Assembly (NCBI RefSeq): GCF_001194135.2
Contig: NC_069000.1
Span: 40,871,483-40,935,482 of the forward strand
Length of the DNA: 64,000 nucleotides
Direction of reading: 5' to 3'
Origin: Octopus bimaculoides
Lineage: Eukaryota
Part shown: one piece after another, positions 43,289-63,547 of the stretch
Layout of the letters: every line of letters starts with the position of its first letter
How positions within the stretch are numbered: position 1 is the stretch's first letter
Made by a program: the position numbers and the translations under genes
The notes under the pieces: model-generated
The model's input: the letters and a program-made list of their open reading frames with translations, nothing else
Told to the model about the DNA's origin: nothing
Databases searched by the model: none

Positions 43289-43293
43289 ATGAG
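43289..43293 (+). CDS. Peroxidase-like gene, candidate exon 1 coding part (ATG AG)
   Basis: aaaaATGAG|gtaagt strong donor; phase 2 joins the 48506 exon to give MRPEIFIVHLLLLASG, a signal-peptide-like start. An alternative first exon could lie in a gap. Confidence 0.6.
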
Positions 43294-46249
43294 GTAAGTG
43301 TTTACGTAACATTTTGTACTTATATACAAACGACTACTTTGCTTTACTTCAAATCATGATTTCATATATATATATATATATATATATATATATACACTCA
43401 CACAAACATTTATGTATATGTATATATAGGTGAATATATATATACACACACGCACACATATATATACATATATATATATATATATATACACACACATATA
43501 TATATATATATATATANNNNNNNNNNNNNNNNNNNNNNNNNNNNNNNNNNNNNNNNNNNNNNNNNNNNNNNNNNNNNNNNNNNNNNNNNNNNNNNNNNNN
43601 NNNNNNNNNNNNNNNNNNNNNNNNNNNNNNNNNNNNNNNNNNNNNNNNNNNNNNNNNNNNNNNNNNNNNNNNNNNNNNNNNNNNNNNNNNNNNNNNNNNN
43701 NNNNNNNNNNNNNNNNNNNNNNNNNNNNNNNNNNNNNNNNNNNNNNNNNNNNNNNNNNNNNNNNNNNNNNNNNNNNNNNNNNNNNNNNNNNNNNNNNNNN
43801 NNNNNNNNNNNNNNNNNNNNNNNNNNNNNNNNNNNNNNNNNNNNNNNNNNNNNNNNNNNNNNNNNNNNNNNNNNNNNNNNNNNNNNNNNNNNNNNNNNNN
43901 NNNNNNNNNNNNNNNNNNNNNNNNNNNNNNNNTATATATATATATATATATGTTTTGCAAATTGGCTAAACTGGCAATATGACCATCCCCAAGTACAACA
44001 CTCATGACTCTTTCCAGAGCCGAATCCTGCTGCCAGACACTTGGTCTTCAAGCAACAACACTTTCTTGCCAGGGTTTGACCACACTATCAGGCAGCTTCA
44101 CATAGCCGTCTGAGTTGAGCCTAAAGTCCTGTTCAAAAACATTTGGTAATGAAGCCAGGTGTGCGGACGCAATCAGAACGCCAGCTGTGTTCCTTTTTAC
44201 TGGCCATGGTCCCGTAGTCTCCGTTGCAGTTATTCATGTCACGTCTTATAACATTTACAGTATCCATTGAGCATTGAGCAGCAGTCATGATGTCAGCATT
44301 TTGATACTTAGCGCGAATCATCATGCACACAAGTAACTCATTTCCAATATTCAGATGGCTTCCAGTCTTCCATCTCAGCTAACTTTTACTTAACTACAAC
44401 AATGACTGATCGCATCAGGCTGTTTCTCAAAAAAAAAAAAAAGGAGACAAAGGTTATCAAGTTTATCCGAACACTCAGAATAGAAATTCTTTTATTCTTT
44501 CATTTGTTTTAATCATTTTGCTGCGGCCACGCAGGAGCACCGCCTTTGTTCGAACAAATCGACTCCAGGACTTAATTCTTTGTAAGCCTAGTACTTATTC
44601 TATCGGTCTCGTTTGCCGAACCACTAAGTTACGAGGACGTAAACACACCAACATCGGTTGTCAAGCGATAATGGGGGGGGGGGTAACACAGACGCTCAAG
44701 CACACACACACACACACACACACNNNNNNNNNNNNNNNNNNNNNNNNNNNNNNNNNNNNNNNNNNNNNNNNNNNNNNNNNNNNNNNNNNNNNNNNNNNNN
44801 NNNNNNNNNNNNNNNNNNNNNNNNNNNNNNNNNNNNNNNNNNNNNNNNNNNNNNNNNNNNNNNNNNNNNNNNNNNNNNNNNNNNNNNNNNNNNNNNNNNN
44901 NNNNNNNNNNNNNNNNNNNNNNNNNNNNNNNNNNNNNNNNNNNNNNNNNNNNNNNNNNNNNNNNNNNNNNNNNNNNNNNNNNNNNNNNNNNNNNNNNNNN
45001 NNNNNNNNNNNNNNNNNNNNNNNNNNNNNNNNNNNNNNNNNNNNNNNNNNNNNNNNNNNNNNNNNNNNNNNNNNNNNNNNNNNNNNNNNNNNNNNNNNNN
45101 NNNNNNNNNNNNNNNNNNNNNNNNNNNNNNNNNNNNNNNNNNNNNNNNNNNNNNNNNNNNNNNNNNNNNNNNNNNNNNNNNNNNNNNNNNNNNNNNNNNN
45201 NNNNNNNNNNNNNNNNNNNNNNNNNNNNNNNNNNNNNNNNNNNNNNNNNNNNNNNNNNNNNNNNNNNNNNNNNNNNNNNNNNNNNNNNNNNNNNNNNNNN
45301 NNNNNNNNNNNNNNNNNNNNNNNNNNNNNNNNNNNNNNNNNNNNNNNNNNNNNNNNNNNNNNNNNNNNNNNNNNNNNNNNNNNNNNNNNNNNNNNNNNNN
45401 NNNNNNNNNNNNNNNNNNNNNNNNNNNNNNNNNNNNNNNNNNNNNNNNNNNNNNNNNNNNNNNNNNNNNNNNNNNNNNNNNNNNNNNNNNNNNNNNNNNN
45501 NNNNNNNNNNNNNNNNNNNNNNNNNNNNNNNNNNNNNNNNNNNNNNNNNNNNNNNNNNNNNNNNNNNNNNNNNNNNNNNNNNNNNNNNTATATATAGATA
45601 GATAGATAGATAGATAGATAGATAGATATACACATACACTTCTGATTGGATCCTATGGAAGAAGTGCTTGAAGACCCTTTCCACAACCTTTCTAAGTCTT
45701 TTTTTTTTACATTTTCAAGTTGCAAGATTCATTACTGCATTGAAATCGTCCAGTCACAGTTATCTTTGTCTTTCATTGTTCCAAAGGCAATGAAATATAT
45801 GCCATTCAAAGTGTTTATATAACCAACAACTTCATTTACGGAAAATAGTAAACCTTTTATTCGAAAAATCTTTATTGTTACAAAACAGAATTTTCTAACA
45901 TTTTTGCTAACAGCAATCCTTTATATGTAAACGAATATTCCCACGTGTGTAGGATTCTAAAAAATCTCTTTTCTCAATAAACTGATTTTATTAACTAACA
46001 ACAAACTCATTTCCTCTATTCTGCACTTTAAATGAAAGCTAATTTTAACTGAATAGTTGTATAACATTACAGCCTTTAAAACTAAAACAAAAATCACAGA
46101 CCTCCAGTACTTCCTTTGTGGACTTCAGTTCAGAAACACCTGTTACAAATGCTAATGGCATAAACAGTAAAATTCTGGATAAAATGCTTTGCGGTGTTTA
46201 ATTACATCTCTGTGAGTTCTAAGTTCATGTCTCTCCACAGTAGAAGTAC

Positions 46250-46620
46250 TGTCCTCGAGTGAGTTTATTGAAAGGTGGGTGAAAGTTGCGAAAATGGCTA
46301 GAGTGGATGGTACCTCTCTAAGTGTAGACCTGAGAATCGGTGAGAAGGACTTGGAGAGGGCACCTGCTCTCGGGGTTTCAGGGAAATCTCGGACAGTGGG
46401 GTTCTTCGATTATCCTTATTGGCTTTCCTGTATCAAGAGGGCCACATCTCCATCATCCTCCACGCCACTTTTTCTTTGTAACCTTTGTATGCTATGCATA
46501 TGTCCCTTCCTTTCAGTGTATACATTTTTTATCATTTCATTATATGTAAACCTCCACATTTTATGTCTGTCTTTGTATTGTCCTCCTCATTTGCTGCCCT
46601 TGTGGCAAATAAATGATATC
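46250..46620 (+). mobile_element. Tx1/L1-clade LINE extreme 3' end
   Basis: SSEFIERWVKVAKMARVDGTSLSVDL resembles the end of the 33-kb element (FVEWWMNVARMTRVNGPDLNVRL*). Confidence 0.7.
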
Positions 46621-61169: not shown

Positions 61170-61229
61170 GAAAAAAACTGAAAATGACGAACAATTTTCT
61201 AGAGATAAATTCAGCAAAATTCATTTCAG
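61170..61229 (+). CDS. Peroxidase-like gene, exon 9 (GKKLKMTNNFLEINSAKFIS)
   Basis: Acceptor ttttttccag|, donor AG|gtgaga; 60 nt, phase 1-1; bridges G.L... to the GD.R motif. Confidence 0.85.
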
Positions 61230-63102
61230 GTGAGATACGACTTTATAATGCTTACGTTTCAAACTGATAAGTACAATGACCGAAAGTAATATCACCTGTA
61301 GCTGCAGTAACGGTGTCACTAGTAGAAATAGCAGTGACTGAAGCAGTGAAGATGACAGCATTGAAGAATGTATTGAGGATTATATTGCTGTTTCTCCATA
61401 CAGACAATACAATGCCATATATAATTATATGATAGATCGCTGACGACTACATTTATATTTTTTCTCCTTGTTTCTCTCCTTATTTCTTTCTGTGTTCTTT
61501 TCAGTTGAAGAGCGTAGCTCGAAACGTCAAAGACTTTCTCTATTCCCGAGCGTTAAACTAATACATCCATTTGTTGTTTACACCACCTGTCTTCGTCTGT
61601 TGTTTTTTTCGTAAATTCTCCCACACATATATATATACATATACATATACACACATATATATATATATATATATATACGCAANNNNNNNNNNNNNNNNNN
61701 NNNNNNNNNNNNNNNNNNNNNNNNNNNNNNNNNNNNNNNNNNNNNNNNNNNNNNNNNNNNNNNNNNNNNNNNNNNNNNNNNNNNNNNNNNNNNNNNNNNN
61801 NNNNNNNNNNNNNNNNNNNNNNNNNNNNNNNNNNNNNNNNNNNNNNNNNNNNNNNNNNNNNNNNNNNNNNNNNNNNNNNNNNNNNNNNNNNNNNNNNNNN
61901 NNNNNNNNNNNNNNNNNNNNNNNNNNNNNNNNNNNNNNNNNNNNNNNNNNNNNNNNNNNNNNNNNNNNNNNNNNNNNNNNNNNNNNNNNNNNNNNNNNNN
62001 NNNNNNNNNNNNNNNNNNNNNNNNNNNNNNNNNNNNNNNNNNNNNNNNNNNNNNNNNNNNNNNNNNNNNNNNNNNNNNNNNNNNNNNNNNNNNNNNNNNN
62101 NNNNNNNNNNNNNNNNNNNNNNNNNNNNNNNNNNNNNNNNNATATATATATATATATATATGTGTGTGTGTGTGTGTGTGTGTGTGTGTATATATATATA
62201 TATATATATGATAAAGCATCACATCGGTAGGATTAGCCCCGTACCATAACAGGCGGTCTTTTTTCCCGATTACCTACAAAGTCTCACGTCTTTGCGCGTG
62301 ATCATCCTTTCGAATTTGGTTTGGCTAAGAATCCTCCGATATAATATAAAGAGTGATTCGTTGTTTTTATCAAGTCTCCTGCAAGACCGTAAAACTTGGC
62401 ACGTTGAATTACCGTAGTCCACCAGCTCATTTTTAAAGAAAATCTTTAAAACCATGTATCTTTGGCAACCTTGGGGTATGGATATGGCCGTTTGGTTAAA
62501 CTCTGTTTGGGTTTGGTTCTCTGGGCACTACCGTTGTCGTCTATCTTTGCATCAACACGACATAAGCTTTCACTTGTGAGGAAAATTTCATAAGTGGGAC
62601 TGTATAAAGACTCTCACAGATCAGAAAGCTCTGCAAAAGGAATTCTCTCAATTTTAGGCTGATAGACCTTATCCATAGCCCGGTTTAACAGTATCACCTA
62701 GCTCTTGGATTACACTAGCGAAGCCCACTTTCTTGAAAGCTTTCAGAAAAGGTTTCCAAACTGTAATTAACACGATTTCTGTTTTCGTTACTCTCTTTTC
62801 CCCTCGTCTTGGAGGACCTGTACAAAAGTTCTAGGTAGCTGTACTCCCACCTTTTTTGATACAACCGTAAGAACAGAAACCCATGGTAAGATATACTGCA
62901 TACAGTCGAAATATTTGTTAGTTCTGTAAAGGAGTCGCTAAGAGATAGATTTTAATTAATTCACAGTAGCTCTTTATCGATAGATGTATTGCATAAAATA
63001 CCAACTATGTTCGATAGTAATAGACACAATCCAACGTCAATGTCGAGATAAAACATACACGATCATGTATTTAATGAAAATATACCTGCCTTTATTTTGT
63101 AG

Positions 63103-63547
63103 GTGATGAGCGAATCAATGAACAGCCTTTAATCATGGCAGTATATCACTTATTTGCTCTTGAATACAATAGGATAGTTACTAAGATGACTACAATGAAC
63201 ATCCCAAGCGCCGCACAACACGCAAAAAAAATCTTAATAGCCGAGTTACAACATATTACTTACAACGAGTTTCTTCCATCTTTGCTTGGTCAAAGTACTA
63301 GCGTGAGATCACAGAGCAGCGGGTATATAAATTATGATCCCACAAAGAAGACTGAAATTTACAATTCCTTCTCCATTGCTTATAAATTGGCTGTGTATTC
63401 GATGTTGAGAAGTAGTTACAAAGATTCTAACGGTGCGGACATTCAAATAGGAGCTACCAGACAAAATAGTGGATATATGGACACTGATGCCAAAAGAGAC
63501 AATATCATAAACCGTTTGTTAACTGACAAAAGTTCAATGATTAATAA
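63103..63547 (+). CDS. Peroxidase-like gene, exon 10 (GDERINEQPLIMAVYHLFALEYNRIV...AELQHITYNEFLPSLLG...NSFSIAYKLAVYSMLRSSY...NRLLTDKSSMIN); gene continues beyond window
   Basis: GD.R.NE.P, F..E.NR and Q.ITY.EFLP.LLG motifs of animal heme peroxidases; acceptor tttattttgtag|, donor AA|gtaagt. Confidence 0.95.

Follow-up and report, generated by a model that had tools for sequence, protein, structure and literature searches.

The window analysed here, a stretch of 64,000 nucleotides of Octopus bimaculoides DNA, contains exons 1-10 of a real and intact gene (LOC106877958), coding for a spliced, secreted-type homolog of the animal haem peroxidases in which about half of the residues that hold or activate the haem have been replaced. 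On balance, the locus is probably best read as a fast-evolving functional gene for a secreted pseudo-peroxidase scaffold with a remodelled binding pocket. The ten exons lie on the + strand between positions 43289 and 63547, with GT-AG at every intron, and encode residues 1-375 of about 636:

43289..43293, +, exon 1 (coding part): ATGAG, comprising Met1 and two further nucleotides; donor GTAAGT at 43294
48506..48552, +, exon 2: remainder of the signal-peptide-like N-terminus, RPEIFIVHLLLLASGE; AG/GT splice sites
48945..48963, +, exon 3: 19-nt micro-exon FFQVVY, with ctacag before it and gtaagt after it
51004..51155, +, exon 4: start of the peroxidase domain (YRNIDGSCNN...); PF03098 profile positions 1-29
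52492..52665, +, exon 5: distal helix, with NFGLFLMHD at 52614-52640
55727..55745, +, exon 6: 19-nt micro-exon DSCCTD, with tttttcag before it and gtaaat after it
56775..56884, +, exon 7: Cys-rich loop SCLGIAVDAAHPLTSPCSESCIPYHKPSLSYDLNCLMG
59489..59584, +, exon 8: Ca-binding loop THYIDAS at 59515-59535; Pfam profile positions 145-171
61170..61229, +, exon 9: KKLKMTNNFLEINSAKFIS
63103..63547, +, exon 10: Arg, Glu, LEYN and the proximal helix; Pfam profile positions 225-328

As an earlier note on this DNA had claimed, the exons splice in frame without stops, giving 1127 nt whose 375-residue translation exactly matches residues 1-375 of the annotated protein (A0A0L8GBQ9_OCTBM / XP_014782522). 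Joined to exon 2, exon 1 yields MRPE..., in agreement with A0A0L8GBQ9, and ATGAG followed by GTAAGT also stands at the start of the O. sinensis gene, inside a conserved 480-bp block (83% identity). Exon 2 is identical to the O. sinensis protein at 15 of 16 residues (tblastn). The two micro-exons, located by a pattern search (exon 3) and a TGYTGY search (exon 6), connect exons 2 and 4 and exons 5 and 7, respectively, and the reading frame breaks when they are left out; both have counterparts in O. sinensis, that of exon 3 likewise of 19 nt. All seven runs of N in the span are intronic and at least 165 bp from the nearest exon edge, while the gapless O. sinensis locus has ten matching exons, equal in length and phase, with no additional coding sequence between them, so that no coding exon is hidden or broken by a gap. 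The window ends 453 bp past exon 10, whose donor GTAAGT stands at 63548, and at least three or four further exons lie downstream. As the window takes in no more than about 60% of the coding sequence, intactness can be judged only with data from outside it, which were used here.

The protein matches PF03098 (animal haem peroxidase) far above chance (E=3.1e-74) and its N-terminus, MRPEIFIVHLLLLASGE, looks signal-peptide-like by inspection, which bears out the earlier assignment to a secreted type of this family. The AlphaFold2 model (mean pLDDT 87.9, pTM 0.89) shows residues 3-14 as a helix, with a linker of low confidence after it, and in Foldseek searches it resembles lactoperoxidase (TM 0.81), myeloperoxidase (TM 0.80) and the DUOX1 structures (TM 0.75-0.77). 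The protein is placed within the invertebrate peroxinectin/chorion-peroxidase-like radiation, with a single peroxidase domain, no canonical partner domain in the chain and a Cys-rich C-terminal tail encoded downstream of the window.

The motifs NFGLFLMHD, THYIDAS, GDERINEQ and LEYN and the His-less proximal helix SFSIAYKLAVYSML (63366-63407) all read as previously described, and the haem-holding set is indeed incomplete. Leu119 (52623-52625) occupies the column of Gln91 and Met122 (52632-52634) that of Asp94 (myeloperoxidase numbering), while the distal His123 (52635-52637) and the Ca ligand Asp124 (52638-52640) are kept. GDERINEQ (at about 63102-63125) retains both the catalytic Arg231 (63111-63113) and Glu234 (63120-63122), LEYN replaces REHN at 63159-63170, and the T, D and S of THYIDAS, a block invariant between O. 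bimaculoides and O. sinensis, agree with the family consensus. The pocket changes are more extensive than the earlier note had listed: past the window end, Asn421 is replaced by Ala and Arg424 by Asp, and RDHG is lost. Among 98 non-octopod homologs, Gln is found in 90, the distal His in 90, Arg in 95, the proximal His in 95 (Tyr in none), Asn421 in 81 and Arg424 in 96; the window protein carries Leu, His, Arg, Tyr, Ala and Asp at these columns. The AFR Arg, found in 96% of the family, is Leu; this residue and Arg424 presumably contact the haem propionates, which an Asp at 424 would repel. Of the 91 positions with at least 85% conservation in the family, 30 are altered, seven of them Arg. Two Cys, conserved at about 86% each, are lost together, as would be expected if they were disulfide partners in a still-folding protein, while most other Cys are canonical.

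The residue on the His336 column is Tyr326 (TAT, 63396-63398), with Lys322 (63384-63386) four residues ahead, and this placement recurs when the protein is aligned by HMMER (phmmer) with EPO and with a cyanobacterial peroxidase, in a MAFFT alignment (110 sequences) and in a profile alignment (295 domains). The proximal His is thus absent, as had been noted, but the site is not simply empty, since Tyr is a possible iron ligand; such a Tyr had itself been named beforehand as evidence against a protein unable to ligate haem, and in sequence alignments it is the residue found.

Orthologs are encoded in O. sinensis ('chorion peroxidase-like', XP_029647656.2 / XP_036366591.1) and O. vulgaris (the N-terminal half of 'peroxidase mlt-7-like', CAI97373xx). 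The O. sinensis ortholog, with collinear introns of ~89% identity and a protein identity of 77.6%, likewise has the Leu and Met distal changes, LEYN, Ala421 and Asp424, but has His where O. bimaculoides has Tyr at the proximal site and Gln at residue 235. Residue 326 is Tyr in O. bimaculoides, Argonauta and one further octopod and His in O. sinensis and O. vulgaris, so that the claimed inability to ligate haem does not extend across the orthogroup. As both the further octopod and the Argonauta outgroup carry Tyr, and in view of the synonymous distances, Tyr appears to be the older state and the His of O. sinensis a later one. The altered pocket motifs are near-identical from Argonauta through Octopus: in Argonauta hians ANFGLFLMHDMF is identical at 12 of 12 residues despite an overall identity of about 47%, and GDDRINEQPLIMAVYHLFALEYNRI, SHYIDASPIFGS and AYKMAIYSML are also conserved. 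The Asn421Ala and Arg424Asp replacements and the loss of RDHG are common to the whole tandem cluster of octopod paralogs, suggesting that the shift away from the canonical mode of haem binding is probably older than the orthogroup. Both the proximal and the distal His are also missing from these paralogs, as is the Arg, and their residue 326 column is Ala or Thr.

Gene-wide substitution rates, taken by themselves, might point to a decaying, non-functional copy that happens to lack a stop, its neutral-looking dN/dS reflecting lost constraint. Against O. sinensis, the NG estimate of dN/dS is 1.52 for 375 codons and 1.29 for 605 codons, the corresponding maximum-likelihood omega values being 1.59 and 1.40; the likelihood-ratio test gives 83 against omega=0.3 and about 3.2 against omega=1, the excess over 1 being not significant (p about 0.07). 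Exon nucleotide identity to O. sinensis (87.8-89.6%) does not exceed intron identity (88.7%), exon 10 and intron identities are equal against the further octopod, a third of the near-invariant residues of the family are altered, and no spliced transcript of the gene was found among Logan-derived proteins; literature searches by accession likewise returned no mention of it. Over the longer distance to the further octopod, dN/dS for exon 10 is 0.55. The reading frame, however, is unbroken in two species across 605 codons, and four species keep it open through exon 10. Across 605 codons, 221 substitutions relative to O. sinensis have produced no stop (simulated neutral P=0.00045), and coding indels number zero, whereas 58 such events fall within 6918 aligned bases of intron (P=2.5e-7). 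The splice dinucleotides of exons 1-10, including those of the micro-exons, are kept at 19 of 19 sites in both species. Amino-acid differences are clustered (permutation p=0.0003), leaving invariant blocks of 16-26 residues that are also conserved in the divergent Argonauta protein, and the joint loss of two putatively paired Cys and the confident structure model further argue against decay. Given the absence of stops, indels and splice changes and the conservation of the remodelled motifs, the gene is judged from these comparisons not to be a pseudogene, and decay is a very unlikely explanation. The earlier view of a protein still under selection holds for the frame, the splice sites and the invariant core and pocket blocks, where constraint appears to reside, and not for gene-wide dN/dS, which is not below 1.

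That the protein is an ordinary active peroxidase, its missing ligand an artefact of misalignment with another His in the proximal position, is more improbable still. The fold, Ca loop, distal His, Arg and Glu and most Cys are canonical and O. sinensis has His at 326, but Tyr326 falls on the His column in four independent alignments, residues 300-345 contain no His, and Gln91, Asp94, Asn421, Arg424 and REHN have been replaced both here and in O. sinensis. A possible, though rather unlikely, alternative is an enzyme that still uses haem but with an unusual ligand: Tyr326, where O. sinensis and O. vulgaris have His, would hold a non-covalent or singly linked haem, and His123 and Arg231 would still cleave H2O2 in a more hydrophobic distal cavity, with catalase-like or atypical peroxidase chemistry. 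The distal His, Arg and ester Glu234 are kept from Argonauta to Octopus and lost in the sister paralogs, a retention that would be unexpected in a pocket without any chemistry and that counts against a pseudo-peroxidase, as does the restriction of residue 326 in the orthogroup to Tyr or His, both iron ligands. Conservation within this fast-evolving protein is highest in the distal and proximal helices, the N-terminal domains of spider and nematode two-domain peroxidases have independently evolved the same pattern, and Lys322 (KLAVY) offers a lead in its parallel to catalase. The Asn partner of the ligand, however, is Ala, the two Arg have become Asp and Leu, the pocket changes recur in paralogs for which haem binding is clearly impossible, as both His and the Arg are missing from them, and a Tyr-His exchange would also be conservative at a buried structural site. 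No protein of the animal haem peroxidase superfamily is known to use Tyr as its haem ligand.

The preferred reading is that of a pseudo-peroxidase scaffold. The protein keeps the peroxidase fold and the Ca2+ site around a rebuilt haem cavity. The hydrophilic distal pair of halide-binding Gln and ester-forming Asp has become Leu and Met, the iron-ligand His has become Tyr and its hydrogen-bonding partner Asn has become Ala, while both family-conserved, putatively propionate-binding Arg are gone. Judged from these residues, the window protein most likely cannot hold a covalently linked, His-ligated haem and hence cannot perform the normal H2O2-driven oxidation of halides or substrates; ordinary peroxidase function has thus probably been lost. 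We infer a stable extracellular scaffold, including the Cys-rich C-terminal tail, in which a conserved remodelled pocket and a rapidly changing surface may serve binding rather than catalysis, perhaps at an interface in an evolutionary arms race with microbes, gametes or the egg coat, or prey.

In catalase, the proximal motif R-x-F-x-Y places an Arg four residues ahead of the Tyr ligand. The proximal Tyr and preceding basic residue of the octopus protein resemble this arrangement, a resemblance only, as the fold and the remainder of the motif are unrelated. Closer in family are the two-domain peroxidases, of which mosquito DBLOX is a named example. In those of Argiope bruennichi (LOC129984809) and a nematode ('chorion peroxidase' A0A183IJ39), a degenerate N-terminal domain similarly keeps the distal His, Arg and Glu, has Tyr at the proximal-His column and a hydrophobic residue in place of the ester Asp, but is of independent origin and fused to a second, canonical peroxidase domain. 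Secreted PF03098 peroxidases form tandem clusters in cephalopods (PMC6386654), and the peroxinectins (family 3) combine adhesion with the peroxidase fold (PMC4420034). Like the octopus protein, peroxinectin and the cephalopod light-organ and ink peroxidases are secreted invertebrate PF03098 members, but they have the full catalytic set, which it lacks, and measured activity. In DUOX, the peroxidase domain forms the ectodomain of a membrane NADPH oxidase and represents an ancient family (family 7 of the peroxidase-cyclooxygenase superfamily); it shares the peroxidase fold minus the proximal His, whereas the octopus protein is free and secreted and lies within the invertebrate radiation. Human PXDNL, a recent vertebrate duplicate with LRR, Ig and vWC domains that reportedly retains the proximal His, is likewise secreted and of the same superfamily, and in it too the halide-binding Gln and the Asp that forms the haem ester are both replaced. 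In the octopus protein, many more residues of the pocket have changed and the domain layout is different. The DUOX domain lacks the proximal His and peroxidase activity (PMC4420034), and PXDNL has no measurable peroxidase activity, which is blamed on its changed distal Gln and Asp positions (PMC8533639). The octopus gene would join these already known inactive relatives.

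The gene under study, LOC106877958, runs beyond the end of the window. Within it, the ten-exon, in-frame structure proposed in the earlier note corresponds to the annotated gene model: the 375-residue translation of exons 1-10 is identical to residues 1-375 of the O. bimaculoides protein A0A0L8GBQ9_OCTBM (XP_014782522, here P0156), and both the organism and the gene are therefore identified. All nine introns have GT-AG borders, and the spliced exons 1-10 (1127 nt) contain no stop codons.

Exons of LOC106877958 in the window
43289-43293, + strand: exon 1, ATGAG with donor GTAAGT, lying within a block conserved between O. 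bimaculoides and O. sinensis
48506-48552, + strand: exon 2
48945-48963, + strand: exon 3, 19 nt, strong splice sites
51004-51155, + strand: exon 4, the YRNIDGSCNN exon
52492-52665, + strand: exon 5
55727-55745, + strand: exon 6, 19 nt, strong splice sites
56775-56884, + strand: exon 7
59489-59584, + strand: exon 8
61170-61229, + strand: exon 9
63103-63547, + strand: exon 10, donor at 63548

Direct joining of exon 2 to the YRNIDGSCNN exon was rejected, as both candidate acceptors (50987 and 51004) result in a frameshift and early stops. This apparent frame break is resolved because the 19-nt exon 48945-48963 lies between the two, and it is thus ruled out as a sign of a pseudogene. Exon 5 joined straight to exon 7 is likewise out of phase, and the frame is restored by the 19-nt exon 55727-55745. 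The window is AT-rich (37.6% GC) and contains ten runs of N. Seven gaps fall within the gene span, all of them intronic and at least 165 bp from the closest exon edge, and the gapless O. sinensis orthologous locus (L004) has ten exons that match these in length and phase, with no additional coding sequence between them; the gaps thus neither conceal coding sequence nor upset the frame. These gaps persist in the more recent, chromosome-scale assembly of O. bimaculoides (L006). Nearly every gap in the gene span is flanked by (TA)n, (CA)n, (TCTA)n or (TGTA/TATG)n microsatellites, which probably explain the assembly breaks.

Microsatellite tracts at the gaps
43340-43516
44700-44723
48553-48650
50762-50990
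54300-54377
56611-56760
58560-58624
61620-61682
63560-63780

The introns also harbour interspersed repeats. Copies of a roughly 320-bp element, 95% identical to each other, occur in introns 3 and 5, the former abutting the gap that starts at 50272, and more diverged copies are found upstream of the gene. Three repeat-like open reading frames were recognised by eye, for which Pfam returned no matches.

Repeats in the window
49952-50271: 320-bp repeat, intron 3
55078-55398: 320-bp repeat, intron 5
about 16104-16364 and 22289-22603: diverged copies of the 320-bp repeat
51442-51732, - strand: mariner/Tc1 transposase-like remnant, intron 4
14776-15156, - strand: non-LTR retrotransposon ORF2-tail-like frame
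33400-33753, + strand: non-LTR retrotransposon ORF2-tail-like frame

The window ends before the gene does, past the exon 10 donor (63548), and the remaining exons are located downstream, in L006:23713-42925. The next two exons are open and code for the counterparts of O. sinensis residues 375-442 and 443-498, respectively, while the last exon (L006:42602-42925), open and unannotated, covers O. sinensis residues 529-636 and encodes a Cys-rich tail with a WSxW motif. This tail has no Pfam match and gives the impression of being thrombospondin-repeat-like, judged by the WSxW motif and Cys pattern alone. The exon for residues 499-528 was not found in the downstream sequence of L006 and probably sits in a 4.8-kb gap (L006:29562-34417). 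Its loss in this gap would account for two faulty gene models, the old one of 501 aa and the new RefSeq model of 1074 aa (XP_014782522.2, P0285), the latter wrongly fusing the gene with the next tandem paralog.

P0156 matches the animal haem peroxidase family PF03098 (E=3.1e-74, 250.9 bits against a cut-off of 25), the alignment spanning profile positions 1-501 of 530, of which the exons in the window provide 1-328. An AlphaFold2 model built with 68 homologs is confident (pLDDT 87.9, pTM 0.89), and Foldseek pairs it with lactoperoxidase 6ky7 (TM 0.81, E=1.6e-32), MPO (about 0.80) and the DUOX1 peroxidase domain (0.75-0.77), so that the all-alpha peroxidase fold is predicted to be present. The protein is of a single-domain, secretory type with a Ca site in a peroxidase fold. 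Its nearest relatives are octopod proteins auto-named 'chorion peroxidase-like' or 'peroxidase mlt-7-like', followed by bivalve and arthropod peroxidases at about 30% identity. The octopod genes form a tandem cluster, as judged from consecutive accession and gene numbers and from the fused models; tandem peroxidase clusters are known in cephalopods at the family level (PMC6386654). No second peroxidase gene was found in window positions 1-43000 by tblastn with ten family members as queries.

The family is characterised by a distal Q-x-x-D-H-D motif, R-x-x-E, a Ca loop and a proximal His hydrogen-bonded to Asn (PMC4420034). These positions, which include the motifs of the catalytically competent families 1-3 (Zamocky et al. 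2015), were compared column by column between the octopus protein and 98 non-octopod homologs.

Active-site and haem-pocket positions, with the column composition among the 98 non-octopod homologs
Distal His (MPO His95): kept, His123 (52635-52637); H in 90/98
Ca-binding Asp after the distal His: kept, Asp124, matching the consensus
Ca loop T-x-F-x-D-x-S: kept as THYIDAS, with T185, D189 and S191 matching the consensus; predicted Ca site
Catalytic Arg (MPO Arg239): kept, Arg231 in GDERINEQ; R in 95/98
Ester Glu (MPO Glu242): kept, Glu234 in GDERINEQ; E in 63/98
Halide-binding Gln (MPO Gln91): changed, Leu119; Q in 90/98
First haem-ester Asp (MPO Asp94): changed, Met122; D in 63/98
REHN: changed to LEYN; R in 95/98, H in 96/98
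Arg of AFR (96%): changed, Leu323
Proximal His (MPO His336): changed, Tyr326 (TAT, 63396-63398); H in 95/98, Y in 0/98
Asn421, partner of the proximal His: changed, Ala400, beyond the window (P0156, L006); N in 81/98
Arg424 of NxQRGRDHG: changed, Asp403, beyond the window (P0156, L006); R in 96/98
RDHG: changed to RYMS in the octopus motif AIQDSRYMS, beyond the window (P0156, L006)

The protein thus lacks the Gln, the ester Asp, the proximal His-Asn pair and both conserved haem-edge Arg residues, and 30 of the 91 family positions conserved at 85% or more are changed. The ester Asp is not universal in the family, as only 63 of the 98 homologs carry it. The distal Q to L and D to M changes, the retention of His, Arg, Glu and the Ca loop, and the change of REHN to LEYN described in the earlier note are all borne out by these columns. 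Its statement that the proximal motif has no His also stands, but the position is occupied by Tyr326, which falls exactly on the His column in four independent alignments and is one of the ligands that the note itself had listed as able to overturn its reading. In the sequence, a basic residue, Lys322, stands four positions before Tyr326 (Lys322-x3-Tyr326). Gln235 (63123-63125), which follows the ester Glu and corresponds to MPO Met243, is His in O. sinensis (L004) and in L001, a contig of a further octopod. Apart from residues 235 (Gln/His) and 326 (Tyr/His), the pocket motifs are invariant.

Among the orthologs, residue 326 is Tyr in O. bimaculoides, in the further octopod represented by three genomic Logan contigs (L001-L003) and in Argonauta hians, but O. 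sinensis and O. vulgaris have His, the codons differing by one base (TAT/CAT); in the paralogs it is Ala or Thr. The orthogroup including Argonauta has 86% bootstrap support in a protein neighbour-joining tree. In that tree the L001-L003 octopod groups with O. bimaculoides (72% bootstrap), a placement set aside on account of the synonymous distances, which are 0.07 between O. bimaculoides and O. sinensis and 0.28-0.29 to the L001-L003 octopod. Since these distances place this Tyr-bearing octopod outside the other two, it is more parsimonious that Tyr326 is the older state and that His arose later in O. sinensis and O. vulgaris, and either tree favours this order. Ala400, Asp403 and the loss of RDHG recur in paralogs from which the distal His, the Arg and the proximal His are also missing, and the shift away from canonical haem binding is therefore probably older than the gene.

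In an alignment of 273 domains, taken from all the homologs retrieved, the proximal position is H in 236, A in 10, Y in 7, N in 7 and L in 5, with a few others. The four Tyr cases outside the octopods (one spider, two nematodes and one Logan sequence) are the first domains of two-domain peroxidases, P0006, P0007 (Argiope bruennichi LOC129984809), P0030 (Soboliphyme baturini) and P0119 (Rhabditophanes sp.), whereas the octopus protein has one domain. The first domains of P0006 and P0007 resemble the octopus gene in keeping the distal His, Arg and Glu, in having a hydrophobic residue in place of the ester Asp and in the proximal Tyr, a pattern that arose independently of the octopus gene. A cephalopod radiation of peroxidase-like genes with Ala or Thr in place of the proximal His, several also without the distal His and Arg, is represented in O. 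sinensis, O. vulgaris, O. bimaculoides and Argonauta (P0005, P0011, P0152, P0153, P0004, P0022, P0041 and P0154) and by the Logan transcript P0053. The Cys-rich C-terminal tail is found in most of the full-length members examined, some being fragments or having other ends, and the auto-names include 'peroxidase mlt-7-like', 'heme peroxidase 2' and 'eosinophil peroxidase-like'.

Over the 375 codons in the window, the gene shares 77.6% protein and 89.6% nucleotide identity with its O. sinensis ortholog. Nei-Gojobori estimates give dN 0.121, dS 0.080 and omega 1.52 (bootstrap range 1.0-2.5), and maximum-likelihood fitting of a pairwise codon model puts omega at 1.59 (likelihood-ratio statistic 3.1 against omega=1). 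When the three downstream exons from L006 are added (605 codons), omega is 1.29 (Nei-Gojobori) and 1.40 (maximum likelihood), and the likelihood-ratio statistics are 83 (test of omega=0.3) and 3.3 (test of omega=1); omega does not significantly exceed 1. Exons are not better conserved than introns (87.8-89.6% versus 88.7% identity with O. sinensis). In exon 10, comparison with the more distant L001-L003 octopod gives an omega of 0.55, and exon and intron identities are equal. Taken together, the omega values and the exon and intron identities indicate that purifying selection does not act with its usual strength across the gene as a whole. When the codons were split by family conservation, omega came out at 2.0, 0.96 and 2.3, but synonymous changes were too scarce for these values to be meaningful, and the approach was set aside.

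The reading frame is nevertheless clearly protected. The 221 substitutions over 605 codons relative to O. sinensis introduced no stops (simulated P=0.00045), there are no coding indels in these codons against 58 events in 6918 aligned intron bases (P=2.5e-7), and all splice dinucleotides are kept. The amino-acid differences are clustered (permutation p=0.0003), and runs of 16-26 residues without any difference span the putative signal peptide, the distal helix, the Ca loop, the helix bearing Arg and Glu, and the QHITYNEFLP helix. Four blocks persist in Argonauta, whose protein is about 47% identical overall: ANFGLFLMHDMF (12/12), GDDRINEQPLIMAVYHLFALEYNRI, SHYIDASPIFGS and AYKMAIYSML. The suggestion that the protein is still under selection is thus upheld for the frame, splice sites and invariant blocks, but not as the usual gene-wide constraint, given omega values of 1.29-1.59. 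Decay into a pseudogene, to which such omega values might point, is very improbable, as stops, indels and splice-site losses are all absent in the comparison with O. sinensis and the differences are clustered. The pattern fits a conserved core and a conserved, remodelled pocket within a rapidly changing protein, with possible diversifying selection on its surface.

Having lost the Gln, the ester Asp, the His-Asn pair and two Arg residues, the protein would not hold haem in the canonical covalent, His-ligated way, and would therefore not act as a normal halide or substrate peroxidase. An ordinary active peroxidase is accordingly poorly supported and hardly credible. Both the columns and the Foldseek matches describe a peroxidase fold with essential haem and catalytic residues replaced. 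Because of these losses, and of the precedents of inactivity in PXDNL and DUOX, we consider that on balance the protein appears to be a pseudo-peroxidase that serves as a binding scaffold outside the cell. The rapid evolution of its surface may reflect an interface under conflict, with microbes, gametes or the egg envelope, or prey. The pseudo-peroxidase interpretation of the earlier note is thus sustained as far as the Gln, Asp and proximal His are concerned, but is qualified by the Tyr at the ligand column and the His in O. sinensis and O. vulgaris.

These same residues bear on the main alternative, that haem is still bound in a non-canonical way. The retained distal His, Arg and Glu and the Tyr or His at the ligand position speak for it, and the spacing of Lys322 and Tyr326 resembles that of Arg and Tyr in the catalase motif (Arg-x3-Tyr), a similarity at the sequence level that serves as a lead only. 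Set against the loss of the canonical haem contacts, we regard this alternative as unlikely, although it deserves consideration. A more specific proposal is that Tyr326, with Lys322 one helical turn before it, takes over iron ligation while the distal His/Arg pair stays in a hydrophobic cavity. The orthogroup would then be a natural Tyr-ligated haem protein in the peroxidase-cyclooxygenase fold, with sister Octopus species toggling between Tyr and His ligation, which we judge to be a speculative and decidedly unlikely reading. Arthropod and nematode double peroxidases may, in their first domains, have arrived at the Tyr solution independently. Were Tyr ligation true, the axial ligand of a peroxidase would here have been swapped in what amounts to a natural experiment.

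No spliced transcript of the gene was present among the database proteins. Literature searches with its accession and run numbers retrieved no paper mentioning it, those on octopus peroxidase expression yielded nothing traceable to it, and those for haem or activity reports on the protein or its orthologs found nothing. Papers on the octopus oviducal gland, ink and salivary gland cite 'chorion peroxidase' or 'peroxidase-like' transcripts or peptides, none linkable to this gene. The gene is already annotated but uncharacterised, and as far as found its degenerate-peroxidase nature is undescribed, while proteins of this kind are themselves known. Auto-names such as 'chorion peroxidase-like' and 'peroxidase mlt-7-like' are not evidence of peroxidase activity in cephalopod transcriptomes and proteomes.

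Enzyme families regularly yield 'dead' relatives with binding or regulatory roles. Among animal haem peroxidases, to our knowledge, few have been recognised, namely the DUOX domain, PXDNL and the first domains of double peroxidases, and the locus would be an octopod addition to these. Its tandem cluster shows graded loss, this gene keeping the distal His, Arg and Glu and its neighbours having lost everything. From Argonauta to Octopus the remodelled pocket has stayed conserved, in a protein that elsewhere changes as fast as, or faster than, expected under neutrality, and closely related species differ between Tyr and His at the iron-ligand position. It therefore offers a compact system for asking what use is made of the peroxidase fold once haem chemistry is abandoned or altered. 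Human PXDNL, changed at just the Gln and Asp positions that are also changed in the octopus protein, has no measurable activity (PMC8533639), and the DUOX domain, which like the octopus protein is without the proximal His, is inactive (PMC4420034).
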